From assembly GCA_002269645.1 (NCBI GenBank), contig NIVC01001259.1:1-64000 (forward strand): a stretch of 64,000 nt of DNA, in the 5' to 3' direction. The translations under genes and the position numbers were made by a program. Positions 3,925 through 35,800 of this stretch are shown in pieces. The first letter of the stretch is position 1, and each line of letters opens with the position of its first letter. The stretch comes from Macrostomum lignano. Its lineage: Eukaryota. The notes beneath the pieces are model-generated. The model ran no database searches. It was not told where the DNA came from and saw only the letters and a program-made list of their open reading frames with translations.

Positions 3925-6900
3925 ATGAAGTTGATATTCGCTTTGCTGCTGCTTGCATTGTCGGCTCAGCTGCTATTCGTTGATGCCGCCCAGCTGCTCA
4001 ACAGGCAGCGCAGGCGCATCGACCAGCTGGGTCACATGATCTCCGCCACCACCGGCCATCACTATGCCGCGTACATCGGCTACGGCAACTACTGCGGCCC
4101 CGGCGGCGCGGGCGTGCCGGTGGACAATCTGGATGCGTGAGTGCGGGCTGGGGAGCGTTCTCGTCCAAGATTTGATATTTATGCGCTTTGATACTACTGA
4201 AATTAATATCTACTGCAATGCTCGAAGCTCAACATGATAATGTGAAAGTGATTTCACCTTGGTTCAAACAATGAAATGGCGCCTCTCTCTCAAACGAAAT
4301 GGCGCCTCTCTCTATCAAATGAAATAGCGCCTCTCTCTCAAATGATATGGCGCCTCTCTCTCAAATGAAATAGCGCCTCTCTCTCAAATGAAATAGCGCC
4401 TCTCTCTCAAATGATATGGCGCCTCTCTCTCAAATGAAATGGCGCCTCTCTCTCTCAAATGAAATGGCGCCTCTCTCTCAAATGATATGGCGCCTCTCTC
4501 TCTCAAATGAAATGGCGCCTCTCTCTCAAATGATATGGCGCCTCTCTCTCTCAAATGAAATGGCGCCTCTCTCTCTCAAATTGAATGGCACCTCTCTCTC
4601 AAATGAAATGGCGCCTCTCTCTCTCAAATAAAAATAGCGCCTCTCTCTCTCAAATAAAAATAGCGCCTCTCTCTCTCAAATAAAATGGCGCCTCTCTCTC
4701 AAATGAAATGGCGCCTCTCTCTCAAATGATATGGCGCCTCTCTCTCAAATGAAATGGCACCTCTCTCTCAAATTAAATAGCGCCTCTCTCTCAAATAAAA
4801 TGGCGCCTCTCTCTCAAATGATATGGCGCCTCTCTCTCACAAATGATAAGGCGCCTCTCTCTCAAATGAAATGGCGCCTCTCTCTCAAATTGAATGGCGC
4901 CTCTCTCTCAGATAAAATGGCGCCTCTTTCTCAAATGAAATAGCGCCTTTCTTAAATGAAATGGCGCCTCTCTCAAATCAAATGGCGCCTATCTTAAACG
5001 AAATGGCGCCTCTCTCAAATGAAATGGCGCCTATCTTAAATGAAATGGCGCCTCTCTCTCAAATTAAATGGCGCATTTCACACAAATGAAATGTCTTTCT
5101 CTTTTTCAGATGAAATGGCGCCTCTCTCTCAAATGAAATGGCGCCTCTCTCTCTCAAATGAAATGGCGCTTCTCTCTCAAACGAAATTGCGGCTCTCTCT
5201 CTAAAATGAAATGGCGCCTCTCTCTCAAACGAAATTGCGGCTCTCTCTTTCAAACGAAATGGCGCCTCTCTCTCTTAAACGAAATGGCGCCTCTCTCTCA
5301 AACGAAATGGCGCCTCTCTCTCAAATGTAATGGCGCCTCTCAAATGTAATGGCGCCTCTCAAATGAAATGGTGCCTCTTCTCTCAAATGAAATGGCGCCT
5401 CTCTCTCAAATTAAATAACGCCTCTCAAATGAAATGGCGCCTCTCTCTCAAATTAAATAACGCCTCTCAAATGAAATGGCGCCTCTCTCTCTTTCTCAAA
5501 TGAAATGGTGCCTCTTTGACTTACTTTACTTAGCTGCAGGGTCTCCGTGCGTCCGGAAACAGCGAGGAGGCGTTGCCGCCCATTTCGCTAGGAGGTGGAT
5601 TGTCGCTCGCCCGGTAGCCCTTAGATAGCGGATGAGCTGGCAGAGATTCTCGGGCCTGAAAACGTCGGAGAGGTCCGGGTTTGGGCCGAGGTAGGTGAGC
5701 CTGTCCTGAGTAAAGGCGGGGCATTCACAGATGAAGTGCTCCGCATTCTCGACACCGGAGAGGCAGAAAGGGCACTCCTCACTGCGGATTTTCCCCTGGA
5801 GGTGACGATGCCTGGCAAAGCAGCCATGACCCTAGAGGGCCATGGTCACCGTCCTGATGTCCCTGCGGTTGAGTCCAAGCAGGGCCCTGCGCAGGGCGGA
5901 GGAAGGACAGGGGACAGCCGCGCGGGATTGCCGGCAGTCGGGGCGTTAGCCCACCTCTCCCTGTGCTTAGAAGCCACCCACTGTTTGATCCGAGTGGTGA
6001 CAACGGCGATGGGGGTGGGGGCCACGGGCAGGGGACCAGTGAAAGAACCGGTCGAGCCAGCCTTGGCCAGGCGATGCAGTCGAGGACTGTACGCAAGCAG
6101 GTGGTGGTGCGCTCAAGGGCGTGAATCGCCGCTTGACTGTCTGAGTGGAGGGTTATCTCCTTCCCCCAGACGCGCTGATTGTACAGCTCCATGGCGCAGG
6201 AGCTGATGGCGAGAACTTCGTTCTGGAAGACGGTGAGCAGGTGCCGGTGTGTTGGGAGAAGGTCGCCACAGTTCTCCCTCCAGACACGATGCAGTAGCCG
6301 TAGCCAGAGGCGAAGTTGATTTGGATTTGGATTTGGTCAAGCAGACGGCGGGTTGTTCTCATTGCCTCCCCTCTAACAAAGAGGTCGAGGGGGAATGTCC
6401 AAGAAGGAGTTCATGCCGGCAAAGGGCGTAGAGGGAGCCGCGCTCATGATAGCTCGACAAGCGCGGCCTTGCACCCTATTTAGAACCTCAAGAACCCCTT
6501 TCACCTCTAGGGCACTATTCCAAATGAAGCCGGCGAAGGAGATGGCCGGTCTAACAATGGCAGTGTAGATCCACCGAAGGCGGCGGGGGTGAGGCCCCAG
6601 GTAGCACCGAAAGCTCCGCGGATCTGCGCGAGAGTCGCGAGAGCTTTGCGGGCTTTGGTTTGGACGTGCGGGGTCCAGCTCAACCTGTGGTCGAGGGTGA
6701 CGCCCAGACATCTGGTTTGTTTCTCCATGGCAACAGGTTTGCCATAGAGGGAGAGCGGTTCGATCCTCAGTTTCGGCGGCTGGTGAACATGATAGCCACG
6801 GTTTTAGACTCAGAGAACCTGAGACCGCAGCTATGTGCTCAGCGCTCGGCACGGTGGATGAAGGCTTGAAGGAGGTCCCTGAGGACCGCGGGTGATGGTC

Positions 6901-9900
6901 CAGCCACAGTGACGGTAACATCGTCCGCATAGCCGACCTCCTGAACTGGGTCCGGATGCGGGCTGCAAAGCAGCTCGTCCATGACTAAATTCCAGAGGAT
7001 CGGGTTGAGGACTCCACCTCGCGGTCCGCCTTTCTGGACTTCCACGGAGCGTGAGTGTCCCAGGAGGTGGCAGTACGATGGGAGACCATGTACATGATCC
7101 AGCGAGTGAGGTGCTCATGCGTGCCCCGGGATTCCAGGGCCCGCTTAAAGGCATCAAAGAGCACATTATTGAAAGCACCATCAATGTCGAGGAAAAGCGA
7201 CAGCGCGTATCCACTGCCAAGCACGGCGCGCTCCAGCTTGTCGACAATTGCGTGCAGCGCACTTTCGATGGAGCGTCCAGGACGAAAGGCGTGCTGATTA
7301 GGGGAGAGCGGGGAGTTCCTCAGCTCAACGAGGAGGCGTCAGAGCACCAGCCGTTCCATCAGTTTGAGGAAGAAAGACGTCAGACTGATAGGGCGGTAAG
7401 CTTTGGCAGAATGATAGTCTCCCTTCCCTGGTAGTCTCATCTTGCCAGGCTTTTGGCACGTACCCGAGGGTAATGCTGGCCTTGAAGAGGTTGCAGAGGA
7501 GGCCGAGAAACCTGTCATTTTTAACTACCTCATGGAGGAAGGCAGGATAAATGCTGTCAGGTCCCGGTGACTTGAAAGGAGAGAAGGATTTTGCGGCGCG
7601 AGCCATCCTCTCTCTGGTAATGATGGTCGAAGCCAGGATCTGTCCGCCCGGAGAGTGGTCCGGTGGGCCTAGCTGCGGTGCGGCACGTGGGAAAAAAGAG
7701 CTGGTGAGCATAATGTCCAGCGATTCCCCAGGGTTCTCAGCGAGCCGGCCGTCCGGTCTTTTAATGACTGAGAGCTTTGACATTTTGTCGAGGGTGAGAG
7801 CCTTAACTACGCGCGAAGTAGGGCGGGTGCCTTCTAACTCCGCGCAGTATTGGCGCCATTTGTCGGACTTGGCTTTCCTGGTTTCACGCTTAAAGTCGCG
7901 GATCGCTTCTTGGTAGGCGGCCAGGTCAGCTGGGTCCTTGCTCTTGCGAGCTTTCCGTTGGAGGCTCGCCTTTGCCTTGCGCCGGAGGGATCCAAGCGCC
8001 GGGTGCCACCAGGGGGCGGATTTTTTGCCTTTGTAGGCTTTAAGAGGACAGGAAGCCTGATGGGCTGTCAGGACGGTCTTGCTGAGCAAGTCTGCAAGGT
8101 CATCCACTTCCTGACAGGTGGTTGGAGCGGCGGTAGACAGCTGATCTGTCTGGCATTTCAGGGTTTCCGTGAAAGCCGTCCAGTCAGTGTTCCGGACGTT
8201 CCTTTTCCACAGGATGTGAGGCTTGGGGCAAGAGGATTGCAATCGAAAACGAACGAAGCGATGGTCAGACAGAGATTCCTCTTCGTCCCACACCTCCCAG
8301 TCCTTGACTAAAGGAGTCAAGCCATGGGAGACGAGGGTAACGTCGAGGGCCTCCGTCCATCGCCCGTTGTCAAAGGTGGGGGTTCCACCAATGTTGCAAA
8401 ACTCAGTATTGGTGGTGCAGATGTAAGCAAGGAGTTCCTCGCCTCTGCTGTTGGAAGTATTACTGCCCCAGTGGGTGTGGTGAGCGTTGACGTCGCCCGC
8501 CACCAACAGCTCGAACCTACGGTTAGAGCAGTAGTCCACGAGGGAGATGAGGTTGGGTGGAACCGCGGGGCCATCGCCAGGGATATAAATCGAGGCGATG
8601 ATGACCGTGCGGTTGGTGATAAATGGTTGAATTGAATGACACAAAGGTCTCTGTCAGAGAGGTCCGGTCTGTGCCAAGCTTTGAGATGGGTTAACATGGC
8701 TGCTCTGGGGTTTTGGGGGTCTTGAAAGCAGTCAAAACCAGCAGGAATATTCAGAATCTTACCTTTCTTTGTCCAGGGCTCCTGGATTAGGATAATGCCC
8801 GGTTTCACAAAGTTTGCCACCCGCATCAGGTTGGTCGAGGCCGCGATGCAGTGGTGTAGGTTTAGCTGCAGGATGTCCACTCCGGGGAATCCACGAGTGG
8901 TCCGCGCAGCTTCCTGCCGGCTCAAGGCGAGTTGTGCAGGAGAGTCGCCTCTTCTGCCTCGCCGATAGCTCCAGGCTCCAGTTCCATGGGCTCCTCCCGG
9001 ATGGTCTCCATGGTCGAGGGCGGGCCGCCACCTGGGCGGCATTCTCGCTCTCGGCCCGGTTTTCCGGGGGGCCGCAGTGGTGACACTGGGCTGGGGGTTG
9101 CTGCGGTTGTGGGCCCTGGCGGTGTCCAGCAGCTGCTTTGCGCGCTGAGTCAGACCAGAGCGTATGGTCTTCCGGGCGGGTTTCCGGCCCTTTCCACGTC
9201 CGCCTGTTGCTGCAGCTTTCGCGGCTTTCCCCCTGACGGGGTCCACGTCCTCGGAGGGGTCGTGACGACCGGGAGCTTCTTTTACTGGGCGTTTCCGCCC
9301 GGCAGAGTCCCCGCTCGCCCGCCTACGTTTCTCCGGGGGCGGTGGACGGGTGGCGTCAGACTCAAAGCTAAAGAGCTGAATCTGCATCAGCCCGACAGAG
9401 ATGAGAGACATGTCCGGATAGCGGAGCATCCAGCTATCCGACAGTCCAAGAATAGCCGTGAAGTCGTTTCCGCCCGGCTTGGAGATGGTCTCGTGAACTA
9501 CGACACCGTTTGCCGGTAGCTCCGGGTTGGTAGCCACTAGCAGGTGACGCAGCTCGTCGGCCTTGGTGATGCAGCTGCGAGCCGGGATCCAGGCACGGTG
9601 CCGGTGTGTCCGGGGTCGTTCATCCTCCCTGTAGATAAACAGGTTTTCCAGCTCGGTGCCCCAGTCGAAGGTTTTCAGCAGCTCGAGGAGCTGCTGTCCT
9701 GACTGGCTGTCGGCGGGCTGGATATGGAGGGCTTGGTCCTCGACTTTCGTCTTTTGGACTGGAATGGTGGTGCCGCTCAAGGCCATCTTGACCAGGTGGG
9801 AGTCCAACCTGCGCCAGATAAGGTCGAGCTGTTCGGCCGTAAGAGGCGTCTCCTGGCCTTGGATAACCTGGGCCGGCCGCCTCTTGGCCATAGCCGCGTA

Positions 9901-10970
9901 GGTGCGCTTCGGCTTGGTGGTTTGGCCAGCGCCCCCCGTTTTGGATCCCTCCACGGCCGTGGGAGCTTCCACACTGCAGAGGTCCCGCCACGGGAGGGGC
10001 CAGCCGCACCAGGAGCTTCGGCGGCACCTGATGCATCTGGCCGGCGCGCGGGGTCCACCCCCTTGTCGGATGTCGGCTCCTCCGCGGGGTTCGCAGAGTT
10101 CCGGCACCCTCCTCGGAGGGCGGCTTTCGCATTCCTCCGTTCCTCCGCTTTGCGCTGGAGAAAGACTACGGGCCCTCGTTTTAGAAATCTGAGGTCCGCT
10201 GTCTTGTTGTCCAGCCACTCCGGTGTTGTCCTGAGCGGCGGCAGCGGCAGACTGAGAGAGGCACCGGAGGTTCCGGTGTTGCGAATGTCCGGCTGGGCCG
10301 CGGTACCAACCTCGGTTGGTGCTCCAGCAGCCTCGGGCGTGTTGGATGTAAATGAATACTCCATGAGTCGCTGAAAGGCGAATGGGGACCAGAGGTGAGA
10401 AGCTGCTGGGCCGTAACCCCAAACCCACCAGCCAGGCCAAGAGGTAGCGACCGGGGGCTGGTTTAAGCCCTTACCGGCCCGACCGCTAGCAACCGAGAAA
10501 CTTGGCTAAGAGCCCGGCTTGGAAAAACCAGAGGCCGAAACCAAAGTACCATCAGCGCGGTACTACACTGGGCCCTTGAGGGAAGCAGGAGGAGTGCCTC
10601 CGGAGCCTGCGGACTGGCCGCATACCCTGTTAAGGTCATAGGGTGATACCTGTTCCTCAGAGCCGTGACCAGAGGTACCTGATACGCACAGGTTCACTTC
10701 CGGGCGGAGCCCGTACCCAACTTGGCCAACAGGCCACGGATGGGTTGCCGCCGCCGGAGCCCAGTCAGTCCAGCAGCCCTAGAGCTGCCTTGAACACATG
10801 CGGGGCGTGAACCCCTGGGTCGGCTTGTGAGTCAGCTTGGAGAGAGTTCTCCCGCCATTCCTGCACCAGAATAGAGGGGGTGCAGGTGTGTAGGATCGCA
10901 GACCTTAGCTCGTAGGCCTGGTCTGTCTCATGCTACACAGGCGTGCTGAACCCACCTTGCATGCATGGTG

Positions 10971-11044
<74 letters not shown>

Positions 11045-12656
11045 GAAATGGCGCCTCTCAAATGAAATGGCGCCTCTCAAATGAAATGGCGCCTCTCAAA
11101 TGAAATGGTGCTTCTCAAATGAAATGGTGCCTCTCTCTCTCAAATGAAATGGCACCTCTCAAATGAAATGGCACCTCTCAAATGAAATGGCACCTCTCAA
11201 ATGAAATGGCGCCTCTCAAATGAAATGGCGCCTCTTGAATGAAATGGTGCCTCTCTCTCTCAAATGAAATGGCGCCTCTCAAATGAAATGGCGCCTCTCA
11301 AATGAAATGGTGCCCCTCTCTCAAATTGCGGTGCCCCTTAATAAACGGCTCGCACAGGGAATTTTAAATTAATTGAAAATGTACTCAACAATTTCCTTTT
11401 TCAAATTCAATAAACGTCAAGTTTACCTAAAATTCTAATTGCTAACTAGTGAAGCCAATCAAACTAAATTTTAAGTGGTTCACAAAAAACTAGTCAAAAG
11501 CGTATCCCAATCTACAAATAGTGGTAATAGCTAACAAAAAGCAATTCCCCGCCCCAATTTTCAGCAAAGGGAGGGGTTACCTCACCTGAAAATAATTATG
11601 TTTCTCTTGCATAAAGCAGAGCGAAAAATGCTTACAACTCTAAAATTACTATAAAATTAACAGGTGCTGCCAGGTGCACGACTACTGCTACGATGATCTG
11701 ATGGAAAAGAAGAACGCTGGAAAGTGCGGCTCAGGCAGCGGCCCCGTGTTCAATCAGTACCTGTCCAGGTTTAACTACAAGGAGAAGAGCAACGGCCAAC
11801 TGGAGTGCCGTAAGAACTTCTTTGATGTGCATTTCAGTTCCTGCCTCTTCATTTCCTCTTTTCCTATCTCAAGGTCTTCTTGTGTCTTAGGTCTTCGTGT
11901 GTCTTTTGTCTACTTGTGTCTTTGGTCTTCTTGTGTCTTAGGTCTTCTTGTGTCTTAGGTCTTCTTGTGTCTTTTGTCTACTTGTGTCTTTGGTCTTCTT
12001 GTGTCTTTGGTCTTCTTGTGTCTTAGGTCTTCTTGTGTCTTAGGTCTTCGTGCGTCTTTTGTCTACTTGTGTCTTAGGTCTTCTTGTGTCTTAGGTCTTC
12101 TTGTGTCTTAGGTCTTCGTGCGTCTTTTGTCTACTTGTGTCTTTGGTCTTCTTGTGTCTTTGGTCTTCTTGTGTCTTTGGTCTTCTTGTGTTTTTAGGTC
12201 TTCTTGTGTTTTTAGGTCTTCTTGTGTCTTTGGCCTTCGTGTGTCATAGGTCTTCCCCTGGGTCTTGGGTCTTCCTGTGTCGTAGGTCGTCCTGTGTCCT
12301 TGGCGTTCCCGTCTTCACCTCTGTCTCTGAGGAACTGCCTTCAAAGTGCATGGTTCACACTCATGATATAGATGACGAGATCTATACCTCCAAGACTCTT
12401 CAGCCCGCCAGCTCGCACCCTATCTAATTGTGTTTCAGTGGATGATCGTAGCACCGACTACTCCAACTGCTTGTACGAACTGTGCCAGTGCGACAAAGTG
12501 TTTGCCGACTGCCTTCGCCCAATCAAGGATCAATACAATATTGAGAACCTGAAGGAGAGCCAGAAGTACCTTCGCAGTCTGGTGCTGCTGATCGAGACTG
12601 CTCCGAGCGTAGCCGACTGGGTGTGGCGCATTGTTGAGTCCCTGCTAGCTGCTTGA
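3925..12656 (+). CDS. Secreted phospholipase A2 (group I/II-like fold), paralog 1; join(3925..4136,11664..11809,12439..12656), 191 aa
   Basis: Signal peptide, RQRRR propeptide site, Ca loop YGNYCGPGG, catalytic [11 protein letters not shown] and CQCDK (Asp99 equivalent), 10 Cys. All introns are GT..AG with consistent phases (2,1); the spliced length of 576 nt is an intact frame. Confidence 0.93.
4268..5515. repeat. Minisatellite aaatgaaatggcgcctctctctc (about 19-25 bp units), left arm, PLA2-1 intron 1
   Basis: Direct tandem repeats; the same unit resumes at 10965 beyond the LINE. Confidence 0.95.
5700..8890 (-). pseudogene. LINE ORF2 APE-RT-RNase H, broken by several frameshifts; RNase H lacks recognisable DGS and WVPGH..GNE..AD segments
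   Basis: Pieces appear in ORF-track entries 8317..10440, 7325..8644, 6985..7224, 6839..7045, 6507..6728, 6373..6930 and 5779..6192. Confidence 0.85.
8920..10364 (-). pseudogene. LINE ORF1 (frameshifted); central domain resembles the DUF4780-type ORF1 of LOA elements
   Basis: ATG at 10364; the frame switches near 9950 into ...[28 protein letters not shown]...FTAILGL...[11 protein letters not shown]. An acidic C-terminus ending LLHNSP* lies in another frame. The domain name is from memory of the family, not a search. Confidence 0.6.
10753..10964 (-). ncRNA. HDV/CPEB3-like self-cleaving ribozyme at the LINE 5' end (predicted)
   Basis: Hand-folded nested double pseudoknot: P1 GCAUGC/GCAUGU with G1.U, P2 CCCAG/CUGGG, P3 GGG/CCC, L3 UUCACGC, J1/4 GU, P4 hairpin, J4/2 CUGA. 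G1 is 10964, the base adjoining the TSD. Confidence 0.8.
10965..11330. repeat. Right arm of the aaatgaaatggcgcctctc minisatellite with a (CT)n expansion at 10971-11040
   Basis: Direct repeats matching 4268-5515. Confidence 0.95.
11868..12300. repeat. 17-bp minisatellite gtcttaggtcttcttgt in PLA2-1 intron 2
   Basis: Tandem units with variants, degenerating rightwards. Confidence 0.9.
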
Positions 12657-12816: not shown

Positions 12817-13813
12817 ACTACCCCACCTGTATCCTCAGCTGTCTGTCACCTCTACCCCACCTGTATCCTCAGCTGTCTGTCACCTCTACCCCACCTGTAT
12901 CCTCAGCTGTCTGTCACCTCTACCCCACCTGTATCCTCAGCTGTCTGTCACCTCTACCCCACCTGTATCCTCAGCTGTCTGTCGCCTCTACCACACCTGT
13001 ATCCTCAGCTGTCTGTCACCTCTACCCCACCTGTATCCTCAGCTGTCTGTCACCTCTACCTCACCTGTATCCTCAGCTGTCTGTCACCTCTACCCCACCT
13101 GTATCCTCAGCTGTCTGTCACCTCTACCTCACCTGTATCCTCAGCTGTCTGTCACCTCTACCTCACCTGTATCCTCAGCTGTCTGTCACCTCTACCCCAC
13201 CTGTATCCTCAGCTGTCTGTCACCTCTACCCCACCTGTATCCTCAGCTGTCTGTCACCTCTACCCCACCTGTATCCTCAGCTGTCTGTCACCTCTACCCC
13301 ACCTGTATCCTCAGCTGTCTGTCACCTCTACCTCACCTGTATCCTCAGCTGTCTGTCACCTCTACCCCACCTGTATCCTCAGCTGTCTGTCACCTCTACC
13401 CCACCTGTATCCTCAGCTGTCTGTCACCTCTACCTCACCTGTATCCTCAGCTGTCTGTCACCTCTACCTCACCTGTATCCTCAGCTGTCTGTCACCTCTA
13501 CCCCACCTGTATCCTCAGCTGTCTGTCACCTCTACCCCACCTGTATCCTCAGCTGTCTGTCACCTCTACCCCACCTGTATCCTCAGCTGTCTGTCACCTC
13601 TACCTCACCTGTATCCTCAGCTGTCTGTCACCTCTACCTCACCTGTATCCTCAGCTGTCTGTCACCTCTACCCCACCTGTATCCTCAGCTGTCTGTCACC
13701 TCTACCCCACCTGTATCCTCAGCTGTCTGTCACCTCTACCCCACCTGTATCCTCAGCTGTCTGTCACCTCTACCTCACCTGTATCCTCAGCTGTCTGTCA
13801 CCTCTACCCCACC
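12817..13813. repeat. 34-bp minisatellite ctaccccacctgtatcctcagctgtctgtcacct between the PLA2 coding regions
   Basis: Near-perfect tandem repeats, period 34. Confidence 0.97.
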
Positions 13814-13868
13814 TTTTCCGTAACCCAAAGCCACATACAGCTCTGCATATTTTCAGAGTTCAGGCGCC

Positions 13869-15979
13869 ATGAGAATTTCACTGAGTCTGGCCTCGCTTCT
13901 GCTTGTACTCGTAATTGCAACGGCGGTGGTACATGCGCAGGAGGACTCTACTCGCCTGGTCCGCAAGCGCAGGCGTCTCGACCAACTGGCCCGCGTACTG
14001 AGCGCTGCCACGGGCCAGAGCTACGCGAGTTACGTCGGCTACGGAAACTACTGCGGCAAAGAGGGCAGCGGACAGCCGGTCGATAAAATTGACGCGTGAG
14101 TGCGGCACGAACGCATGATTAGGGTGCGTGTAGCTTTACTGGATTAATAGCCGAGTGTATATAGAGTTAATATTGGGTAAGATTAGGTCTAATACGTGTC
14201 TTTGTGATGTTCTGTCGGATAAATACCTGTCTAGATGGTGTTATGTTGGATAAATACCTGTCTAGATGATGTTCTGTTGGATAAATACCTGTCTAGATGG
14301 TGTTCTGTTGGATAAATACCTGTCTAGATGATGTTCTGTTGGATAAATACCTGTCTAGATGGTGTTCTGTTGGATAAATACCTGTCTAGATTGTGTTCTG
14401 TCGGATAAATACCTGTCTAGATGGTGTTCTGTTGGATAAATACCTGTCTAGATGGTGTTCTGTTGGATAAATACCTGTCTAGATGGTGTTCTGTTGGATA
14501 AATACCTGTCTAGATGGTGTTCTGTTGGATAAATACCTGTCTAGATGGTGTTCTGTTGGATAAATACCTGTCTAGATATGTTCTGTTGGATAAATACCTG
14601 TCTAGATGGTGTTCTGTTGGATAAATACCTGTCTAGATGGTGTTCTGTTGGATAAATACCTGTCTAAATGGTGTTCTGTTGGATAAATACCTGTCTAGAT
14701 GGTGTTCTGTTGGATAAATACCTGTCTAGATGGTGTTCTGTTGGATAAATACCTGTCTAGATGGTGTTCTGTTGGATAAATACCTGTCTAGATATGTTCT
14801 GTTGGATAAATACCTGTCTAGATGGTGTTCTGTTGGATAAATACCTGTCTAGATGGTGTTCTGTTGGATAAATACCTGTCTAAATGGTGTTCTGTTGGAT
14901 AAATACCTGTCTAGATGGTGTTCTGTTGGATAAATACCTGTCTAAATGGTGTTCTGTCGAATAAATACCTGTCTAGATGGTTTTCTGTCGAATAAATACC
15001 TGTCTAGATGGTGTTCTGTTGGATAAATACCTGTCTAGATGGTGTTCTGTTGGATAAATACCTGTCTAGATGGTGTTCTGTTGGATAAATACCTGTCTAG
15101 ATGGTGTTCTGTTGGATAAATACCTGTCTAGATGGTGTTCTGTTGGATAAATACCTGTCTAGATGGTGTTCTGTTGGATAAATACCTGTCTAAATGGTGT
15201 TCTGTTGGATAAATACCTGTCTAGATGGTGTTCTGTTGGATAAATACCTGTCTAGATGGTGTTCTGTTGGATAAATACCTGTCTAGATGGTGTTCTGTTG
15301 GATAAATACCTGTCTAGCTGGTGCCCAGCTTGATAAATGCATGTGCTCAACTCATCATCGAATGCATCGACAATTCCAGCTGCTGCTTACAGCACGATCA
15401 CTGCTACGACAGACTGAACGCCAAAGACAAAAGGAACCAGTGCGGCTTCTTGTTCGGCACGTACATAACAGCGTACTCGTACCAGAATGCGGACAACGGG
15501 CTGATACTCTGCGGTAAGAATTCAGAGGCAGCTCTGCGGTAAACCCGCCTGACTCTCGCGTCAGAACCCCTTGTTCGACCCACATTCATTTGGGGTGTTT
15601 GTGCATGAAAATTGTCCTGCGGGTTGTTTACGTGTTATTCAAACCCCTTTGTGTGCACCCTTTGTGAGCGGTGTATTAGAGCGTGCCTGCGTACAGCACA
15701 CCGGAAAGAAAGCAGAATCCTGCCACTGAACTGCTGTTCCATCCTCAGTGATCCTTCAAATTTTCAGTTGACAACGGCAAAACTGCCAAATCCAAGTGCA
15801 AGCGAGAGCTGTGCCGGTGCGACCTGGAGTTCGTGCGCTGCCTCCAGCCAGTCCAGCACCTGTACAACACGGCCAACTTAAAACGCCAGAAGGCGCAGCG
15901 AGTCATGGCGGGGATTGTGGAAAAAACTGGACGGCTGTTTAGAAATGCGAAGGACACGATTTTGTCCTGGATTGGTTGA
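13869..15979 (+). CDS. Secreted phospholipase A2, paralog 2; join(13869..14095,15380..15513,15768..15979), 190 aa
   Basis: Signal peptide, RKRRR site, YGNYCGKEG, DACCLQHDHCY, CRCDL, 10 Cys. Same intron positions and phases as paralog 1; 573-nt intact frame. Confidence 0.93.
14205..15317. repeat. 31-bp minisatellite ggataaatacctgtctagatggtgttctgtt in PLA2-2 intron 1
   Basis: Tandem repeats, period 31. Confidence 0.97.
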
Positions 15980-16164
15980 AGCTGGTTGACAACTGGCAAA
16001 ATTTTCTGCATAGCATAACCAGATGCCGATGGTTGAACAAAACTTTACAAATAAATAAATCCTTGCTACTCGGAGACACTTATAATTACTTATAAAACCA
16101 TAGTACTTGACTTATTGTACTTGGATTATGGGGTTAAAAATACACACACACATTCAGCCAAAAC

Positions 16165-18090
16165 ATTCTGCAAGCAAACATCCTGCAGACACAAGCATCT
16201 ATCCTGCAGACACAAGCATCTATCCTGCAGACACAAGCATCTATCCTGCAGACGCAAACATCCTGCAGACGCAAAAATCCTGCAGACGCAAACATCCTGC
16301 AGACGCAAACATCCTGCAGACACAAGCATCCTGCAGACACAAGCATCTATCCTCCAGACACAAACATCCTGCAGACGCAAACATCTATCCTCCAGACACA
16401 AACATCCTGCAGACGCAAACATCCTGCAGACACAAACATCCTGCAGACACAAACATCCTGCAGACACAAGCATCTATCCTGCAGACGCAAACATCCTGCA
16501 GACACAAACATCCTGCAGACACAAACATCCTGCAGACACAAGCATCTATCCTGCAGACTTTTTTATTAGAGGCAGGGGGGTGTGTGCACCCTGGTGCACT
16601 TTAAGCGACATAGGCACACAACCGGCGAGAGGCATTACTGCCCATTCTGCCGACTCCCCTGAGCAGGCATACAAACGCGCGGATACGTACGCAGGCACAC
16701 ACTCACACAGGAGTGTACAGCGGCCCTAACTTTATATTATCGTTAGGCATGTACACTTCACTGCGCCTTGGGGGGTTGGCTCTCAAGGCCGTTAATTGCA
16801 CGAGCAGAGCCAAGCCGAGATTCCAATTCAGCCCCAAATTAATGTGACTGCACTTGGAATCGAGCCTGGGTCGCTGGCACGCCAGAGCCTGCGCTACCGC
16901 TGGGCTACGGCCCCCCTATATCCTGCAGACACAAACATCCTGCAGACACAAACATCCTGCAGACACAAACATCCTGCAGACACAAACATCCTGCAGACAC
17001 AAACATCCTGCAGACACAAACATCCTGCAGACACAAACATCCTGCAGACACAAACATCCTGCAGACACAAACATCCTGCAGACACAAACATCCTGCAGAC
17101 ACAAACATCCTGCAGACACAAGCATCTATCCTCCAGACACAAACATCCTGCAGACGCAAATATCCTGCAGACACAAACATCCTGCAGACACAAGCATCCT
17201 GCAGACACAAACATCCTGCAGACACAAACATCCTGCAGACACAAACATCCTGCAGACACAAACATCCTGCAGACACAAACATCCTGCAGACACAAACATC
17301 CTGCAGACACAAACATCCTGCAGACGCAAACATCCTGCAGACACAAACATCCTGCAGACACAAACATCCTGCAGACACAAGCATCCTGCAGACACAAACA
17401 TCCTGCAGACACGAACATCCTGCAGACGCAAACATCCTGCAGACACAAACATCCTGCAGACACAAGCATCCTGCAGACACAAACATCCTGCAGACACAAG
17501 CATCCTGCAGACACAAACATCCTGCAGACACAAGCATCTATCCTCCAGACACAAACATCCTGCAGACGCAAATATCCTGCAGACACAAACATCCTGCAGA
17601 CACAAGCATCCTGCAGACACAAACATCCTGCAGACACAAACATCCTGCAGACACAAACATCCTGCAGACACAAACATCCTGCAGACACAAACATCCTGCA
17701 GACGCAAACATCCTGCAGACACAAACATCCTGCAGACGCAAACATCCTGCAGACACAAACATCCTGCAGACACAAACATCCTGCAGACACAAGCATCCTG
17801 CAGACACAAACATCCTGCAGACACGAACATCCTGCAGACGCAAACATCCTGCAGACACAAACATCCTGCAGACACAAGCATCCTGCAGACACAAACATCC
17901 TGCAGACACAAGCATCCTGCAGACACAAACATCCTGCAGACACAAGCATCCTGCAGACACAAACATCCTGCAGACACGAACATCCTGCAGACGCAAACAT
18001 CCTGCAGACACAAACATCCTGCAGACACAAGCATCCTGCAGACACAAACATCCTGCAGACACAAGCATCCTGCAGACACAAACATCCTGC
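16165..18090. repeat. 17-bp minisatellite atcctgcagacacaaac, interrupted by a SINE
   Basis: Tandem repeats; they account for the spurious long ORFs with a 17-aa period on both strands. Confidence 0.97.
16559..16918 (-). mobile_element. tRNA-derived SINE (about 360 bp)
   Basis: Minus-strand head GGGGGCCGTAGCCCAGCGG...GGCTCGATTCC contains Pol III A- and B-box-like motifs; A-rich 3' end (ctctaataaaaaa); TSD tatcctgcagac at 16547-16558 and 16919-16930. Confidence 0.8.
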
Positions 18091-18457: not shown

Positions 18458-19846
18458 ATGGCAGCAGCGGGCAGGGCGACGGCGTCGGGCAGGTCGTCAA
18501 TCGACAGTCGTTCGTTTCCAAAATTCCAGCCGATGCCGTCGAACGCGAACAACAGAGGCTGGCAGAGGCAGCAGCAGTCCACGCAGCAACAGGCGCCGCC
18601 GACTCAGGCTGGCGGGCAGCACTGCGGCCGCTCGCACTCTGTCAAGCAGCAGAACCTCTGCCCAGGCCAGCAGGACGATGACTCCGACGCCAGGCAGGTC
18701 TGCTGCTCCGCGCACCCCAACGTGGCCGGCTGCTGCTCGGCCAGACCGCCCGCCCTGCCGCTTGGGGCCGCCGGCTACTCAGCCTGCCAGCGGCCCTACA
18801 AGCCGCCGCCGCCACTCGGCGGCAACTGCGGCCGCGCCGTACCGCTGGCCTCGCTAACCAGAATCTACAGGCCCGAGGATGAGCAGCCGAGTGCCGAGGA
18901 GGGCGCTGGTGGCCCTGACTGGGAGACGGACGGCGGCGAGGGCCAGACGGCTACCGCGACGGCCACCGCCACCACGGGGGTGCGCACCGATGACGCGGCG
19001 ACCGCAGGCACCGGGGCAGCTGACGAAGGCGCCGACCTGGTGGCTACGCACAGCTGTCCGGTGAGCTCGGTCAGTCCGGAGTCCCGCCAGGGCTGCTGCC
19101 GAAGGCCGCCTGGCCAGACGCCGCCGCTGTCGCAGCTGCAGGTCCTCATCCAGCAGCCACCGCAGCCTCAGTTGGAAGCCGCTCCTGCCAACGCCAACCA
19201 GACGGACGCGGCCAAGCCCGACAATGCCCGGCGACACAGGCGCCGCCGGCTGTTCTTTCCGTCGCTCTCCCGACGCAAGAAGCAAACAGCTGACGGCGGC
19301 AGCGGCGGCGGGCAGAGAAGGCGCTCAACAACTGAACCACCGCCGACACAGCCGCCGCCATCGGAGCCGCAACTGACTCAGCCGGTGCAGGAACTGCAGC
19401 AACCGCGGGTGCAGCAGCAGCAGCAGCGACAGAGACAGCAGAGCATCTCAATGCGGACGGCCCCGTTGTCATCCAGCCGCCCGTGGTGGCAGCAGCAGCA
19501 GCACAATCAGTACCAGCAGCGCCACAGCAAGCAGAGCCAGCAGCCGCTGTTTTTGCAGTCGCTGTCCTCTCCGGCACCGCTGGGAGATTCGACAATCTAC
19601 GCCTGCGGCAGCGGCGGCGGCGGCGGCGGCGGCGCTTCCCGCCGTACGCCAGACTTCGAACCAGAGACAGAGCGCAGTCCGCCACGGCTGCACCCCTGCC
19701 AGCGCCACCGTGTGCAGCAGCAGCAGCAGCAGCAGCAGCAGCTCACCAACCGAGGCCCCTTTTCTGGCCTGGTCCGGTCAAGGGACAGCTTCTCTGCCCA
19801 GCACTACTACAGCAGCCGAAGCAGCTCGGCCTCTGACTTGTATTGA
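18458..19846 (+). CDS. Hypothetical 462-aa Q/P/S/G-rich, probably disordered protein (single exon as seen)
   Basis: Long ATG-initiated ORF, GC-rich against AT-rich flanks, not tandem-repeat derived; no recognisable domain. Confidence 0.5.
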   Translation: MAAAGRATASGRSSIDSRSFPKFQPMPSNANNRGWQRQQQSTQQQAPPTQAGGQHCGRSHSVKQQNLCPGQQDDDSDARQVCCSAHPNVAGCCSARPPALPLGAAGYSACQRPYKPPPPLGGNCGRAVPLASLTRIYRPEDEQPSAEEGAGGPDWETDGGEGQTATATATATTGVRTDDAATAGTGAADEGADLVATHSCPVSSVSPESRQGCCRRPPGQTPPLSQLQVLIQQPPQPQLEAAPANANQTDAAKPDNARRHRRRRLFFPSLSRRKKQTADGGSGGGQRRRSTTEPPPTQPPPSEPQLTQPVQELQQPRVQQQQQRQRQQSISMRTAPLSSSRPWWQQQQHNQYQQRHSKQSQQPLFLQSLSSPAPLGDSTIYACGSGGGGGGGASRRTPDFEPETERSPPRLHPCQRHRVQQQQQQQQQLTNRGPFSGLVRSRDSFSAQHYYSSRSSSASDLY

Positions 19847-23212: not shown

Positions 23213-24463
23213 TCAGGACTTCTCCGGCATCTCCTGCAGCGTGTGCCACTGGGCGATGGGCCGCCTGGGATTGGCCAGCATGTCCGACCAATGGCGCAGC
23301 TCGGCCTGCGTGGCCGTGCAGCCCAGCACGACGCGGCCAATCGGCTCGCTGGTGCCGATGCGGTCGTAGTCAACCACCGTGACGATGAGCGTCACCTTCT
23401 GGATCTGCTCGAACGGAACTTCGAAGGTGAACGACTCGTTATAATAAGGGTTCAACGTGCACTTCTTAATAGTGGTCTTCTTCTTCTTCAACCGCTTGCC
23501 GTTCATCATCAGCGACAGTTTGACGTAAGGATCCGACAGGCCGCCGACGTCCATCTTCTTGAGGTTCTTGGCCTCCAGGATCACGATGGTCAGCTTGCCG
23601 GCCGTGGGCACGTAGCGCAGCGAGAAGCAGATGTCGCCGAGCTTGTTGCTCTTGTCGTCCTCGCTCTCCGGCGGATCGACGTCTTTCCACTCTTCGATGA
23701 CGCGGGCGAGGTCCATGCAGCCGAGGGGCAGCTTGATCAGGCCGATCTGGTCGTGCTTGGAGAACCTGTCGAAGTCGTAGATGGCAAACACCAGCGTCTT
23801 CGAGGGCACGTCGGCGTACGGCACCTTGAAGACGAAGGTCTCGTTGAACACCGGGTTGAGCGTCTTGCGGTGCACCTTGGTCTCGAATTTCTTCTTCTTG
23901 TCCGGCAGGATGTACGTCTTCACGTAGGGGTCCGAGGTGCCGCCCATGTCCATGGCCGGCAGGTCCGCGGCTTGGATGACGCCCACGGACAGCTCGCCCT
24001 TCTGGAAGTCGTAGTCCAGCGAGTACTGCAGCTTGCCCAGCTTTTCCGCCTCCTTCTCCTCGGCTCCTTCGTTGTCCTCCATCGCGTCGGCCAGCTCCTC
24101 CATGTCCGGCTGCACTTTCTCTTTGCCGAGCTCGCCGCCAAGCAGCTGCACATTCTTCATGTCCACCGCGCCTTTGCCCTTCTTGCCGTCTTTGCCGCCC
24201 TTCTTCTTGCCTTTGCAGATGCAGCGGCGGCAAATGCAGAACAGAATGAGCAGCACAAGCAGCGCCGCGCCCACCAGGATGGCCACCACGGCCGCCTTCG
24301 ACATGTGCATCTTCTCCGATAGGAAGTCCAGCGCTACATTCGCCTGCTTCAGCGCCTTCTCACTGTTGCTCTTCTCTGTGGAGCCCGGCGTGCCTTCGCC
24401 GCCTCCGCTGGGAGTCGTGCCGTCATCGCCGTCTGCCGGCTTGCCCGCCGTCTCCTTGGTCAT
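23213..24463 (-). CDS. SYT1: Synaptotagmin-1 homolog, intronless CDS, 416 aa
   Basis: N-terminal TM helix with Cys cluster; C2A ([21 protein letters not shown]); C2B ([31 protein letters not shown]); C-terminal [10 protein letters not shown]. Confidence 0.97.
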
Positions 24464-25588
24464 CGCCTTATGGTTCGGGTATGCGGAATCGCTCGCTGGC
24501 AGGGGGTTTTTGCTCCGCTGAGATCTGGGATCGGGGCTGAGCTGGGGGGGATGCGGCAGTTAGGCCAATATTTAACGTAAAAGCCCGGCCGAGCTGCGGA
24601 CTCCGGTGGTCACCGCGCGCAGCCCAAGCAAATCGATTGCCGATTCCCCCGCCGCCCTCACCCTCCACCCCGCCAGCGCCATCTGCCCCTCTCCGCTGGC
24701 GCATCCCCTCCCCGCCCCACCCTTCGGTCCCGACCACCAGCAGCAGCGCCAACCTCAATTCCGCTGCTCAGTTGCCCCCGGCAACCCGCGGGATCCAGCA
24801 GGAGCGGATCGATACTGAAGGGGCCTCCGCTCCCCACCACCTCTAGTCTGCCAACCCCGCGAGCCTGTAGGAGGGTCGGAGGGGATGAGGGAAACAAGCT
24901 TGGCTCTTCCCATTCCTGGCCCTCCCCCACCAGCGCCTGCAGCTCTGGGAGCTGAGTTGGAAACGGTTGGCTGGGAGGAAGAGAACTCTCTTTCTAGTTT
25001 TTTCACTAGGGGGGATTTGGGAGGATTTAGGAGAATAGGAAATGCGGCTGGCAGTCCGCTGGGGGGATGAGTGCAGCGGAGGGGAGGGCGGCTCTGCAGG
25101 CCGGCGGGGTCGATGTGTCCGGAGGCCAGAGGCGGACCAAGAAACACAAGGAGCTATTGAGGCCTCTAATTTTAGACTTTTGGCTTAGCCCTGGAGCTGC
25201 TCCATTCTCCCCACTTCTCCCACCAACCCTCCTTCGCTCTGGGCTCTCTCACACACACTAGCAGCTAAGCCTCAGAGGCATCTGCGCTCTCCCTCTCTCC
25301 TCCCCTCTCTCACTCTGCCGTGCTGCCCTATTAAGCAATAGGGCTACGCAGGGCTGCAGTGCGCACACAATTGACAGAGCAGATTGGAACTGGCCAACTG
25401 TGTAGAGGCTATGGAAGTGGGGCTGAGTCTGAGAGATCACGGTGTGTCTCTTCTGCCTGTCATACAGATCAAACAGACGTATTTTAGCAACTAATAATTC
25501 AATGGTTCTGGATGCTAGTGAACAAATTGTGGCAAGTGATGGATCGAAAATATTGCCACTTATAAGCGTCCAGCCAGGAAAGTGGGGG

Positions 25589-27460
25589 TCAGAGAGTGGA
25601 TAGTGGCGGATCAGAGAGTGGATAGTGGCGGATCAGAGAGTGGATAGTGGCGGATCAGAGTGGATAGTGGCGGATCAGAGAGTGGATAGTGGCGGATCAG
25701 AGAGTGGATAGTGGCGGATCAGAGAGTGAATAGTGGCGGATCAGAGAGTGGATAGTGGCGGATCAGGGAGTGGATAGTGGCGGATCAGAGTGGATAGTGG
25801 TGGATCAGGGAGTGGATAGTGGCGGATCAGAGTGGATAGTGGCGGATATGAGAGTGGATAGTGGCGGATCAGAGAGTGGATAGTGGCGGATCAGAGAGTG
25901 GATAGTGGCGGATCAGAGAGTGAATAGTGGCGGATCAGAGAGTGGATAGTGGCGGATCAGGGAGTGGATAGTGGCGGATCAGAGTGGATAGTGGTGGATC
26001 AGGGAGTGGATAGTGGCGGATCAGAGTGGATAGTGGCGGATATGAGAGTGGATAGTGGCGGATCAGAGAGTGGATAGTGGCGGATCAGAGAGTGGATAGT
26101 GGCGGATCAGAGAGTGGATAGTGGCGGATCAGAGAGTGAATAGTGGCGGATCAGAGAGTGGATAGTGGCGGATCAGAGAGTGGATAGTGGCGGATCAGAG
26201 TGGATAGTGGTGGATCAGGGAGTGGATAGTGGCGGATCAGAGTGGATAGTGGCGGATATGAGAGTGGATAGTGGCGGATCAGAGTGGATAGTGGCGATCA
26301 GAGAGTGGATAGTGGCGATCAGAGAGTGGATAGTGGTGGATCAGGGAGTGGATAGTGGCGGATCAGGGAGTGGATAGTGGCGGATCAGAGTGGATAGTGG
26401 CGGATCAGAGTGGATAGTGGCGGATCAGAGAGTGGATAGTGGCGGATCAGAGAGTGGATAGTGGCGGATCAGAGAGTGGATAGTGGCGGATCAGAGAGTG
26501 AATAGTGGCGGATCAGAGAGTGGATAGTGGCGGATCAGGGAGTGGATAGTGGCGGATCAGAGTGGATAGTGGTGGATCAGGGAGTGGATAGTGGCGGATC
26601 AGAGTGGATAGTGGCGGATATGAGAGTGGATAGTGGCGGATCAGAGTGGATAGTGGCGATCAGAGAGTGGATAGTGGCGATCAGAGAGTGGATAGTGGTG
26701 GATTAGGGAGTGGATAGTGGCGGATCAGGGAGTGGATAGTGGCGGATCAGAGTGGATAGTGGCGGATCAGAGTGGATAGTGGCGGATCAGAGAGTGGATA
26801 GTGGCGGATCAGAGAGTGGATAGTGGTGGATCAGAGTGGATAGTGGCGGATCAGAGTGGATAGTGGCGGATCAGAGTGGATAGTGGCGATCAGAGAGTGG
26901 ATAGTGGCGATCAGAGAGTGGATAGTGGCGATCAGAGAGTGGATAGTGGCGGATCAGAGTGGATAGTGGTGGATCAGGGAGTGGATAGTGGCGGATCAGA
27001 GAGTGGATAGTGGCGGATCAGAGAGTGGATAGTGGCGGATCAGAGAGTGGATAGTGGCGGATCAGAGAGTGGATAGTGGCGGATCAGAGTGGATAGTGGC
27101 GGATCAGAGAGTGGATAGTGGCGGATCAGAGAGTGGATAGTGGCGGATCAGAGAGTGGATAGTGGCGGATCAGAGAGTGGATAGTGGCGGATCAGAGAGT
27201 GGATAGTGGCGGATCAGAGAGTGGATAGTGGCGGATCAGAGTGGATAGTGGCGGATCAGAGAGTGGATAGTGGCGGATCAGAGTGGATAGTGGCGATCAG
27301 AGAGTGGATAGTGGCGGATCAGAGAGTGGATAGTGGCGGATCAGAGTGGATAGTGGCGATCAGAGAGTGGATAGTGGCGGATCAGAGAGTGAATAGTGGC
27401 GGATCAGAGTGGATAGTGGCGGATCAGAGAGTGGATAGTGGCGGATCAGAGAGTGGATAG
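25589..27460. repeat. 20/22-bp minisatellite gagagtggatagtggcggatca
   Basis: About 1.9 kb of tandem repeats with unit variants. Confidence 0.97.
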
Positions 27461-32812: not shown

Positions 32813-35800
32813 CTAGCAATCTACGCCCCCCGTTGGGGAGCCAAAGAAATGCAATACACGTTTTTTTAATAAGCTACATGTATCCTTGAAATCTTAAAAA
32901 ATCTCCTGTCAAACCTTGTAAGCCTTGACATGTCAGTTATCCCCCCCACAAGCTTTAACATATCAACTTCCCCCCTTGACATCTCAGCAATGCCCCCAAT
33001 AAGCCTTGGAAATCTAAAAATATCTGTCAACCTTCTAACCCTAACCCTAGCCTAACCCTAACCCTAACCCTAACCCTAACCTAACCCTAAAGCATTGAAA
33101 TTTCAGTAATTCTCCCTAAGAGTCATTATAGCACTACTACAGCATTATAGCGATTCCTTGCAAGCCTCAACATCGTAGGGATTCCCAAATGAATCTCTTA
33201 ACTTCGACATGAAGCTTCTTTTATTTTTTACATTACGCTTTTTTATCAGCGATCCCTCCCCTGAGGAGGCATCAAATAATGTAATAAAAAGTTTTCAATA
33301 AACTACATGTAGCTTCTGACTTTAGCCTTGAAATCTCATTTATACCCCCGTGAGCCTTGACATCTCAGCTATTCCCCCCGTAAGCCTTGACATGTCAGCG
33401 ATGGCCCCATAAACCTTGAAATCTAAAAAATCCCCTGTTAACCTTGAAACCCGATAAAATATAACCCTCAACCCACACCTGACCTAAACCTAACTTTAAC
33501 CCAACCTAAAGCCTTGAAATCTCAGCAATTCTTCTCCCCTAAGCCTTAACATTTTAGTGATTCTTTCTTTAAGAATCACAGCACTATAACGATTTCCACC
33601 AAGCTTTGACATCGTAGCAATTCCCAAATGAATCTTTTAACTTCGACATGACTTTTCTTTTATGTATACATAGTGCTACTTTTATTTTTTACATGACTTT
33701 TCTTCTATCAGCGCCCCCCCCGTGACGAGCCAACAAAGAATGCAATAAAAAAATGGAGTAAAGTACATGAACTTTGAAGTAGCTTCTGACTTTTGCTTTG
33801 ACATCTCAGAAACCCCCCCCCCGTAATCTCAGTTATTCTCTGAGAGCCTTGACGTCTCAGTTTTTCTCCCCAGCACAGCTAATAGTTGCATTTAATTTTT
33901 ACATGAACCCTTTATGTCTGACATGACGTTTCTTTTATTCTACCGAGACGCTTCTTAATTTTTTAAATGACACTTTCATTAGTTTTTAAATGAGGCTTAT
34001 ATGATTTTTTCTTGACGCTTTATGATTTTTACATGACGCTTCTATGATTTTTTCTGACGCTTCTATGATTTTTACATGACGCTTCTATGATTTTTTACAT
34101 GACGCTTCTATGATTGTTTACATGACGCTTCTATGATTTTTATATGACGCTTCTATGATTGTTTACATGACGCTTCTATGATTGTTTACATGACGCTTCT
34201 ATGATTGTTTACATGACGCTTCTATGATTGTTTACATGACGCTTCTATGATTGTTTACATGACGCTTCTATGATTGTTTACATGACGCTTCTATGATTTT
34301 TATATGACGCTTCTATGATTTTTTACATGACGCTTCTATGATTTTTTACATGACGCTTCTATGATTGTTTACATGACGCTTCTATGATTGTTTACATGAC
34401 GCTTCTATGATTGTTTACATGACGCTTCTATGATTGTTTACATGACGCTTCTATGATTTTTACATGACGCTTCTATGATTTTTACATGACGCTTCTATGA
34501 TTGTTTACATGACGCTTCTATGATTGTTTACATGACGCTTCTATGATTGTTTACATGACGCTTCTATGATTGTTTACATGACGCTTCTATGATTTTTACA
34601 TGACGCTTCTATGATTTTTACATGACGCTTCTATGATTGTTTACATGACGCTTCTATGATTTTTTACATGACGCTTCTATGATTTTTTACATGACGCTTC
34701 TATGATTTTTTACATGACGCTTCTATGATTGTTTACATGACGCTTCTATGATTTTTATATGACGCTTCTATGATTTTTACATGACGCTTCTATGATTTTT
34801 ACATGACGCTTCTATGATTGTTTACATGACGCTTCTATGATTGTTTACATGACGCTTCTATGATTGTTTACATGACGCTTCTATGATTGTTTACATGACG
34901 CTTCTATGATTTTTACATGACGCTTCTATGATTGTTTACATGACGCTTCTATGATTTTTATATGACGCTTCTATGATTGTTTACATGACGCTTCTATGAT
35001 TGTTTACATGACGCTTCTATGATTTTTATATGACGCTTCTATGATTGTTTACATGACGCTTCTATGATTGTTTACATGACGCTTCTATGATTTTTACATG
35101 ACGCTTCTATGATTTTTTACATGACGCTTCTATGATTGTTTACATGACGCTTCTATGATTTTTTACATGACGCTTCTATGATTTTTTACATGACGCTTCT
35201 ATGATTGTTTACATGACGCTTCTATGATTTTTTACATGACGCTTCTATGATTGTTTACATGACGCTTCTATGATTGTTTACATGACGCTTCTATGATTGT
35301 TTACATGACGCTTCTATGATTTTTTACATGACGCTTCTATGATTTTTTACATGACGCTTCTATGATTTTTACATGACGCTTCTATGATTGTTTACATGAC
35401 GCTTCTATGATTTTTACATGACGCTTCTATGATTTTTACATGACGCTTCTATGATTGTTTACATGACGCTTCTATGATTTTTATGACGCTTCTATGATTT
35501 TTACATGACGCTTCTATGATTGTTTACATGACGCTTCTATGATTTTTACATGACGCTTCTATGATTGTTTACATGACGCTTCTATGATTGTTTACATGAC
35601 GCTTCTATGATTGTTTACATGACGCTTCTATGATTTTTTACATGACGCTTCTATGATTGTTTACATGACGCTTCTATGATTTTTACATGACGCTTCTATG
35701 ATTTTTACATGACGCTTCTATGATTGTTTACATGACGCTTCTATGATTGTTTACATGACGCTTCTATGATTGTTTACATGACGCTTCTATGATTTTTACA

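Follow-up and report, generated by a model that had tools for sequence, protein, structure and literature searches.

A cationic amphipathic C-terminal helix on a secreted phospholipase A2 of Macrostomum lignano: retained membrane-binding segment or released peptide?

Whether the last 30 residues of a secreted phospholipase A2 (sPLA2) stay on the mature enzyme or are cut free as a peptide is the question raised by a 64,000 nt stretch of the genome of Macrostomum lignano, a free-living flatworm (contig NIVC01001259.1, positions 1 to 64,000; hereafter the window). The window is eukaryotic in character, with many introns and minisatellites, and contains two adjacent sPLA2 genes, here called paralog 1 and paralog 2. 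An initial annotation had read the end of paralog 2 as a Lys-Arg (KR) dibasic site, a 29-residue segment (the 29-mer), a Gly and a stop, and had proposed that the protein is a precursor of both a lipase and an amidated, membrane-active peptide. The reading favoured here, to which about an even chance is given, is that the tail would be a retained interfacial membrane-binding helix, integral to the mature enzyme. The more solid result is the existence of a protostome sPLA2 clade that lacks Cys27 and bears such tails.

The tail of paralog 2 and the enzyme that carries it

Positions 15881-15979 of the plus strand translate to KRQKAQRVMAGIVEKTGRLFRNAKDTILSWIG and then a stop, exactly as first annotated. 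With six K/R and two D/E residues the 29-mer has a net side-chain charge of +4, again as proposed, and it contains no Cys. Its hydrophobic residues recur with a 3.6-residue period; the helical periodicity claimed for them is thus borne out, although the accompanying list of positions was incomplete, A8 and L26 having been omitted. The helical hydrophobic moment (muH) of the 29-mer is 0.569, compared with 0.207 +/- 0.104 in shuffled sequences, and this value was reached by 0.12% of 5000 shuffles (p 0.0012). The moment peaks sharply at 100 degrees, and the hydrophobic and basic faces lie ~180 degrees apart. The amphipathicity of the 29-mer is beyond chance.

AlphaFold2 predicts the 29-mer as a single uninterrupted helix, with a predicted local distance difference test score (pLDDT) of 84-90 in the full-length protein. 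When the mature protein is modelled without signal peptide and propeptide, the tail helix spans residues 124-153 (pLDDT 78-85; predicted template modelling score, pTM, 0.79 with the tail included), and the KR pair is placed in a hinge directly ahead of it. The 29-mer fits the criteria of linear cationic amphipathic alpha-helical membrane-active peptides, namely 12-40 residues, no Cys, positive charge and a high hydrophobic moment. A glycosylphosphatidylinositol (GPI)-anchor signal or transmembrane segment was considered and rejected, as the tails of both paralogs are interrupted by charges at intervals of 3-6 residues; an endoplasmic reticulum (ER)-retention signal was likewise sought in the tail and none is present.

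Paralog 2 comprises three exons on the plus strand (Table 1), is transcript-supported and gives a spliced product of 190 aa. All splice junctions are GT/AG, the donors being GTGAGT (after position 14095) and GTAAGA, with a CAG acceptor at each intron. The product is 100% identical to NCBI PAA62050.1 (BOX15_Mlig018473g2, Macrostomum lignano); therefore the tail belongs to an annotated gene product, and the gene model matches the annotation in the database.

Profile and fold support the assignment of paralog 2 to the secreted PLA2s, as the initial annotation had held. The protein matches Pfam PF00068 (secreted phospholipase A2) over residues 39-154 with E 5.4e-24 and 85 bits against a cutoff of 32, and its match to the group III model PF05826 is weak (E 2e-06). 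Searched against the PDB with phmmer, it finds many solved enzymes of groups I/II/V/X, with E down to 5.5e-18. Foldseek superposes the AlphaFold2 model on group I/II/V/X structures over ~125 columns with a template modelling score, TM(target), of 0.76-0.85; in the same search no counterpart of the tail was found in solved structures. The active-site motif CCLQHDHCY keeps His48 and Asp49, and the H and D are invariant or nearly so in the homolog alignment.

The calcium loop, YGNYCGKEGSG, has Tyr28 and Gly30 in place, with Glu at canonical position 32 (codon 14061-14063). Paralog 2 alone has Glu here among the best 150 homolog matches, and paralog 1 retains Gly. Inactivation of the enzyme by Gly32Glu was considered and found to be unsupported: because ~21% of homologous domains carry a non-Gly residue at this position, mostly Leu or Met, Glu32 is no argument for inactivity.

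Mature paralog 2 has 10 Cys (five disulfides), Asn at position 27 and no Cys past helix 3. It follows that the Cys27-Cys126, group I Cys11-Cys77 and group II Cys50-C-terminal bonds are all absent; the features defining sPLA2 groups I/II/V/X are summarised in PMC12421130. At the other end of the protein the propeptide finishes in RKRRR, and therefore paralog 2 must meet a proprotein convertase.

The product of paralog 1 is 191 aa long and identical to P0003/PAA70179.1. Its tail has the same length as that of paralog 2, is neutral and more hydrophobic, and is itself amphipathic (muH 0.44, p~0.001). The initial annotation was right that paralog 1 has neither the dibasic site nor the terminal Gly. 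The tail is nonetheless no addition peculiar to paralog 2: that of paralog 1 is equally long, and the extension is clade-wide. The mature isoelectric point (pI) is 9.0 for paralog 2, whose tail has a pI of 11, compared with 5.0 for paralog 1.

Over 573 coding bases, the window and a second genomic copy of paralog 2 (locus L001 on NIVC01001979.1) are separated by 4 substitutions, all of them synonymous (0 non-synonymous), and one of the four, at position 15904, falls in the tail. This shows purifying selection on the whole gene and nothing specific for KR or Gly. The three deposited M. lignano copies are identical in protein. A UniRef entry from an older M. lignano assembly (A0A1I8FPH9; P0002), 283 aa, at first seemed to be a variant copy with another junction; it is a frameshifted chimera that fuses paralogs 1 and 2 and is unfit as evidence for sequence variation at the KR junction.

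Tail-bearing homologs and their processing signals

Searched exhaustively with HMMER, 1.84 billion representatives yielded 938 relatives, and tails were counted in the best 150, a tail-bearing member being one with a Cys-free stretch of 20-75 residues past the last helix-3 cysteine. By this definition 29 of the best 150 carry tails, which extend 8-44 residues beyond the core. They include proteins of the nemertean Tubulanus, the brachiopod Lingula, the bivalves Sinanodonta, Mactra, Magallana and Mytilus, Octopus, a millipede, a centipede and a shrimp. No relatives between 44% and 100% identity were found by word-indexed protein searches or by the exhaustive HMMER search, and a metagenome scan with the exon-3 peptide gave no match. 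A literature search turned up no proteomic or expression data and no paper that deals with the paralog 2 gene, with a PLA2 of Macrostomum or planarians, or with C-terminal sPLA2 extensions of amphipathic character.

The C-terminus of an sPLA2 is normally tied to the calcium loop by the Cys27-Cys126 disulfide. In the homologs, absence of Cys27 accompanies absence of any C-terminal Cys (35/43 vs 0/82, Fisher p = 1e-23). The tail-bearing homologs all lack Cys27 and have no Cys after helix 3, so that their C-terminus is untethered. Judged from this cysteine pattern, the Cys27-less sPLA2s of protostomes are a distinct structural clade with a C-terminus set free from the core.

Composition of the tails is consistently biased. 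Relative to the core, the tails contain roughly twice as much of each of Trp, Phe, Leu and Lys; they are also rich in Ile and have no Cys at all. Trp is found in 12/29 tails, and in 12/29 the highest hydrophobic moment of an 11-residue stretch is nominally significant (p<0.05). The sequences themselves are hardly alignable and vary widely in length. The likeness of five residues at the end of the 29-mer to a bee-venom peptide, pointed out in the initial annotation, carries no evidential weight, as a Trp near the tail end recurs in the family; homology to that peptide was rejected on the same ground, the resemblance covering five residues only.

In the metagenomic homolog P0014 a similar Ser-Trp motif is aligned at the same tail position. 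Isoforms P0162-P0168, from Octopus sPLA2 genes that belong to this clade, differ mainly in the last exon, and their alternative tails are short and alike (…KILGGLFKH… / …KLIGGLFNH…), which suggests that the Octopus tail may be a swappable module too.

The family can serve as its own control for conservation of processing signals. In 23/28 members an N-terminal [KR]R propeptide site stands at a fixed position ahead of the start of the mature protein, and by this sequence signature the family plainly consists of convertase-activated zymogens. Only 4/29 members have [KR]R where the core meets the tail; 11/29 have a dibasic pair of some kind there, and this region is basic in every sPLA2. The last residue is Gly in 4/29 members, and two further tails end in Gly-Lys. 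Conservation of KR and the terminal Gly had been proposed as a check on the precursor, with non-conservation named beforehand as one outcome that would speak against it; the signals are not conserved, a result that applies to distant homologs only, the comparison having been made at <=44% identity.

The six members with a Gly or Gly-Lys ending are paralog 2, P0009, P0013, P0023, P0030 and P0042, the latter five from Lingula, Tubulanus, Octopus and Mactra. C-terminal amidation of whole sPLA2 tails in these species may be worth a look.

Possible roles of the tail

How a retained tail might work can be outlined from these features. The tether Cys27-Cys126 has been lost in the clade, and a free, Cys-free extension of 10-60 residues, prone to form an amphipathic helix, stands in its place. 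In the favoured reading this extension would stay on the mature enzyme and act as an extra interfacial helix, lying on the membrane beside the catalytic surface. The cationic tail of paralog 2 would steer the enzyme to anionic membranes, for example bacterial ones, and the neutral, hydrophobic tail of paralog 1 would be well matched to zwitterionic lipid or to lipid from the diet. Both processing signals of paralog 2, KR and the terminal Gly, would be lineage-specific; they might permit partial cleavage or C-terminal amidation and would not be the reason that the tail exists.

Several observations point towards such retention. The tails of both paralogs are of equal length and significantly amphipathic, and those of the 29 homologs are Cys-free and of similarly biased, Trp/Lys-rich composition. 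The N-terminal [KR]R is conserved and the junction [KR]R and terminal Gly are not. AlphaFold2 predicts one long helix, and the differences between the two genomic copies are synonymous only, including the one in the tail. Interfacial Trp and basic residues govern the membrane affinity of sPLA2s. In Lys49 myotoxins the membrane-active cationic/hydrophobic 115-129 region works while attached to the PLA2 scaffold, and synthetic versions of it are antibacterial (PMC12650257).

Three points weigh against this reading. The KR lies in what is modelled as an exposed hinge of a protein that passes a convertase, so at least partial cleavage is plausible. Terminal Gly occurs in 4/29 tails against a Gly frequency in the tails of 4.1% (p = 0.03), with the two GK endings in addition; this excess is a weak hint and no more. 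The tails are hardly alignable, and a function shared among them is suggested by their physicochemistry.

The partial-cleavage point leads to the precursor proposed initially, in which the protein would be cut after KR, the core trimmed by a carboxypeptidase, the Gln cyclised and the Gly used for amidation, yielding an enzyme and a free cationic, membrane-permeabilising 29-mer. What stands of that interpretation is that a secreted PLA2 carries a cationic amphipathic helix; for a free peptide that is processed and amidated there is no comparative support, and its release is judged unlikely. The elements required for it are present, as KR, Gln and terminal Gly all occur, the KR sits at the hinge preceding the predicted helix, the 29-mer combines a charge of +4 with a muH of 0.57 and no Cys, a convertase is already needed at the N-terminus, and a few homologs likewise end in G or GK. 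Precursors cut into several chains have precedents among PLA2s: they give rise to the heterodimeric enzymes of scorpions and to the acidic subunit of crotoxin. In group III PLA2 the flanking domains are removed from the precursor (PMC12421130). However, the tail is older than the signals, since paralog 1 and 25/29 homologs have a tail without a junction [KR]R. Moreover, ~0.55 members with both signals are expected by chance (29 x 0.14 x 0.14) and one is observed, so that their co-occurrence in paralog 2 is no more than chance at family rates. The KR itself is also a poor furin site, lacking basic residues at both P4 and P6; given the established preferences of furin and of PC1/3 and PC2 at these positions, an enzyme of PC1/3 or PC2 type would be required for cutting. 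The fullest form of the proposal, in which KR cleavage and amidation would free a 3.31 kDa pyroglutamate (pGlu)/amide helix able to permeabilise anionic membranes and to act in synergy with the 13.6 kDa core secreted alongside it, as a host-defence or prey-digestion device, is regarded as distinctly unlikely. Calculated masses are 17,247 Da for the mature protein left whole, 13,593 Da for the trimmed core with 5 disulfides, and 3310.85 Da (pGlu and amide), 3327.87 Da (amide alone) or 3328.86 Da (no modification) for the 29-mer.

The same hinge could serve other ends. C-terminal helices of carboxypeptidase E and PC1/3 are granule-sorting signals that bind membranes. By analogy the tail could bind membranes of the trans-Golgi network (TGN) or granules for regulated secretion, or mask the interfacial surface until the KR is cut, the peptide being a by-product. 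A clade-wide amphipathic C-terminal helix on a zymogen-type secreted enzyme would fit such a role, as would the position of KR in paralog 2, and the slight excess of terminal G/GK fits passage through amidating granules. Yet tail lengths range from 8 to 44 residues, and since most members lack a cleavage site the tail cannot in general serve as a removable lid; sorting or latency is accordingly given a low probability, one that makes it doubtful as the tail's function. Self-association through a coiled coil that dimerises the enzyme is thought extremely unlikely. The hydrophobic stripe at 3, 6/7, 10, (14), 17, 21, 25 and 28 does fit a/d spacing in a 3-4 heptad pattern, and many sPLA2s act as dimers (Lys49 dimers, PMC12650257), but Gly at 9 and 15 and Thr and Ala at core positions would make a poor coiled coil, and the short tails of many homologs are unable to form one. 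Nor is the tail readily dismissed as a functionless, drifting appendix tolerated after loss of the Cys27-Cys126 disulfide. Barely alignable sequences and widely variable lengths are what drift would produce; persistence across several phyla, the consistent compositional bias, the 12/29 tails with a nominally significant moment and the zero non-synonymous differences between the two copies make it very unlikely.

If the tail is retained, these proteins would represent a structurally distinct and so far uncharacterised protostome sPLA2 type, with five disulfides, no Cys27-Cys126 and a free amphipathic C-terminus, whose membrane selectivity could be tuned by a charge swap of one helix. The adjacent M. 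lignano paralogs, one acidic with a hydrophobic tail and the other basic with a cationic tail, are a natural test pair for this idea. Cleavage of paralog 2, should it occur, would instead give one of the rare instances in which a single precursor yields both an enzyme and an antimicrobial-type peptide, and a first candidate host-defence peptide of this genetically tractable flatworm. Either outcome would be of moderate, specialist interest and has no bearing on a long-standing open question.

Genomic setting and known systems

Features of the two genes and of their surroundings are listed in Table 1. The overlapping AATAAA hexamers downstream of paralog 2 are likely to be its polyadenylation signal.

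Table 1. Coordinates of the sPLA2 paralogs and of other features in the window
Feature	Position	Strand	Content	Basis
Paralog 1 exon 1	3925..4136	+	Signal peptide, RQRRR propeptide site, Ca2+ loop	
Overlapping long open reading frames (ORFs), paralog 1 intron 1	7325-10440	-	Two ORFs, one of 439 aa	
Paralog 1 exon 2	11664..11809	+	CCQVHDYCY active site	
Paralog 1 exon 3	12439..12656	+	Tail = last 32 codons before stop, 12558-12653	
Paralog 2 exon 1	13869..14095	+	Signal peptide, propeptide, mature N-terminal helix, Ca2+-binding loop	ORF, donor, in-frame splice
Paralog 2 signal peptide	13869-13937	+	23 aa	Read from sequence
Paralog 2 propeptide	13938-13976	+	QEDSTRLVRKRRR, 13 residues, ends RKRRR	Read from sequence
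Paralog 2 exon 2	15380..15513	+	Active-site helix CCLQHDHCY (His48/Asp49), beta-wing region	
Paralog 2 exon 3	15768..15979	+	Core helix 3 (CRCDLEFVRC), junction YNTANL, KR, 29-mer, Gly, stop	
Lys-Arg dibasic pair at core/tail hinge	15881..15886	+	Candidate prohormone-convertase site	
Cationic amphipathic helix	15887..15973	+	QKAQ...LSWI, 29 residues	Hydrophobic moment, predicted helix
Terminal Gly codon and stop	15974..15979	+	GGT 15974-15976, TGA 15977-15979	Translation; second genomic copy L001 ends alike
Two overlapping AATAAA hexamers	16050..16059	+	~70 nt past paralog 2 stop	Read from sequence
462-aa ORF	18458-19846	+	Rich in poly-Gln, poly-Ala and Arg	
416-aa ORF	23213-24463	-	Two C2 domains	
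Minisatellite arrays	4270-5491, 11030-11318, 11872-12298, 12818-13814, 14208-15323, 16161-18090, 25577-27460, 33947-38119, 57129-58732			

The minisatellites are long and highly regular; their repeat units measure 17-48 bp and are present in up to 184 copies, and several lie inside PLA2 introns or between the paralogs. The gene of paralog 2 measures 2111 bp in the window vs 1449 bp in L001, and much of this difference is due to a 31-bp array in its intron 1. Intron 1 of paralog 1 owes its 7.5 kb to a non-LTR (long terminal repeat) retrotransposon remnant, recognised by the match of the 439-aa ORF to PF14529 (endonuclease-reverse transcriptase family; E 2e-19). Further downstream, the 416-aa ORF with two C2 domains (PF00168, E 1.5e-58) looks like a synaptotagmin-like gene or exon and is unrelated to the PLA2 tail. 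The 462-aa ORF has no Pfam match; it may represent a coding exon of low complexity or an artefact of GC-rich repeats.

Compared with known systems, paralog 2 stands closest in its core to the sPLA2s of groups I/II/V/X, with which it shares the fold (TM ~0.8), the CCxxHDxCY motif, a Ca2+ loop that keeps Tyr28 and Gly30, and the signal peptide, and in groups IB and X an N-terminal propeptide is likewise removed at a basic site (PMC12421130). It departs from them in having only 10 Cys, with three bonds missing, in Glu32 and in the 30-residue, Cys-free helical tail. A long C-terminal extension is also found in group IIF, where it is not known to be an amphipathic helix. As in paralog 2 it follows a classical core, and it stays on the IIF enzyme (PMC12421130). 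The IIF extension has a free Cys, however, IIF keeps the group II disulfides, and there is no sequence relationship between the two.

Cleavage of chains has its own parallels. In heterodimeric scorpion PLA2s, segments are separated by cleavage at basic residues; the small subunit remains disulfide-linked, whereas the tail of paralog 2 has no Cys by which it could be held. Precursor flanks of group III sPLA2 are cut at basic residues in maturation (PMC12421130), but group III is a separate branch, PF05826. Carboxypeptidase E and PC1/3 share with paralog 2 a C-terminal amphipathic helix on an enzyme of the secretory pathway and are unrelated to PLA2.

The Lys49 myotoxins of viperid venoms have a cationic/hydrophobic, membrane-damaging C-terminal region that acts within the protein (PMC12650257), as the tail of paralog 2 would in the favoured reading. 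In those toxins Lys replaces Asp49, the protein is catalytically inactive and the active region lies inside the disulfide-bonded core; paralog 2 keeps Asp49 and adds a free helix, and because Asp49 is retained it is no member of that class. What it has in common with bee venom is the idea of pairing a lipase with a cationic amphipathic helix, although the bee uses separate genes and a group III PLA2, and the five-residue resemblance comes without detectable homology. Were the two-in-one reading of paralog 2 true, one gene would do what bees achieve with two, and the Cys27-less clade would be a store of membrane-active helices, either attached to the enzyme or released from it.

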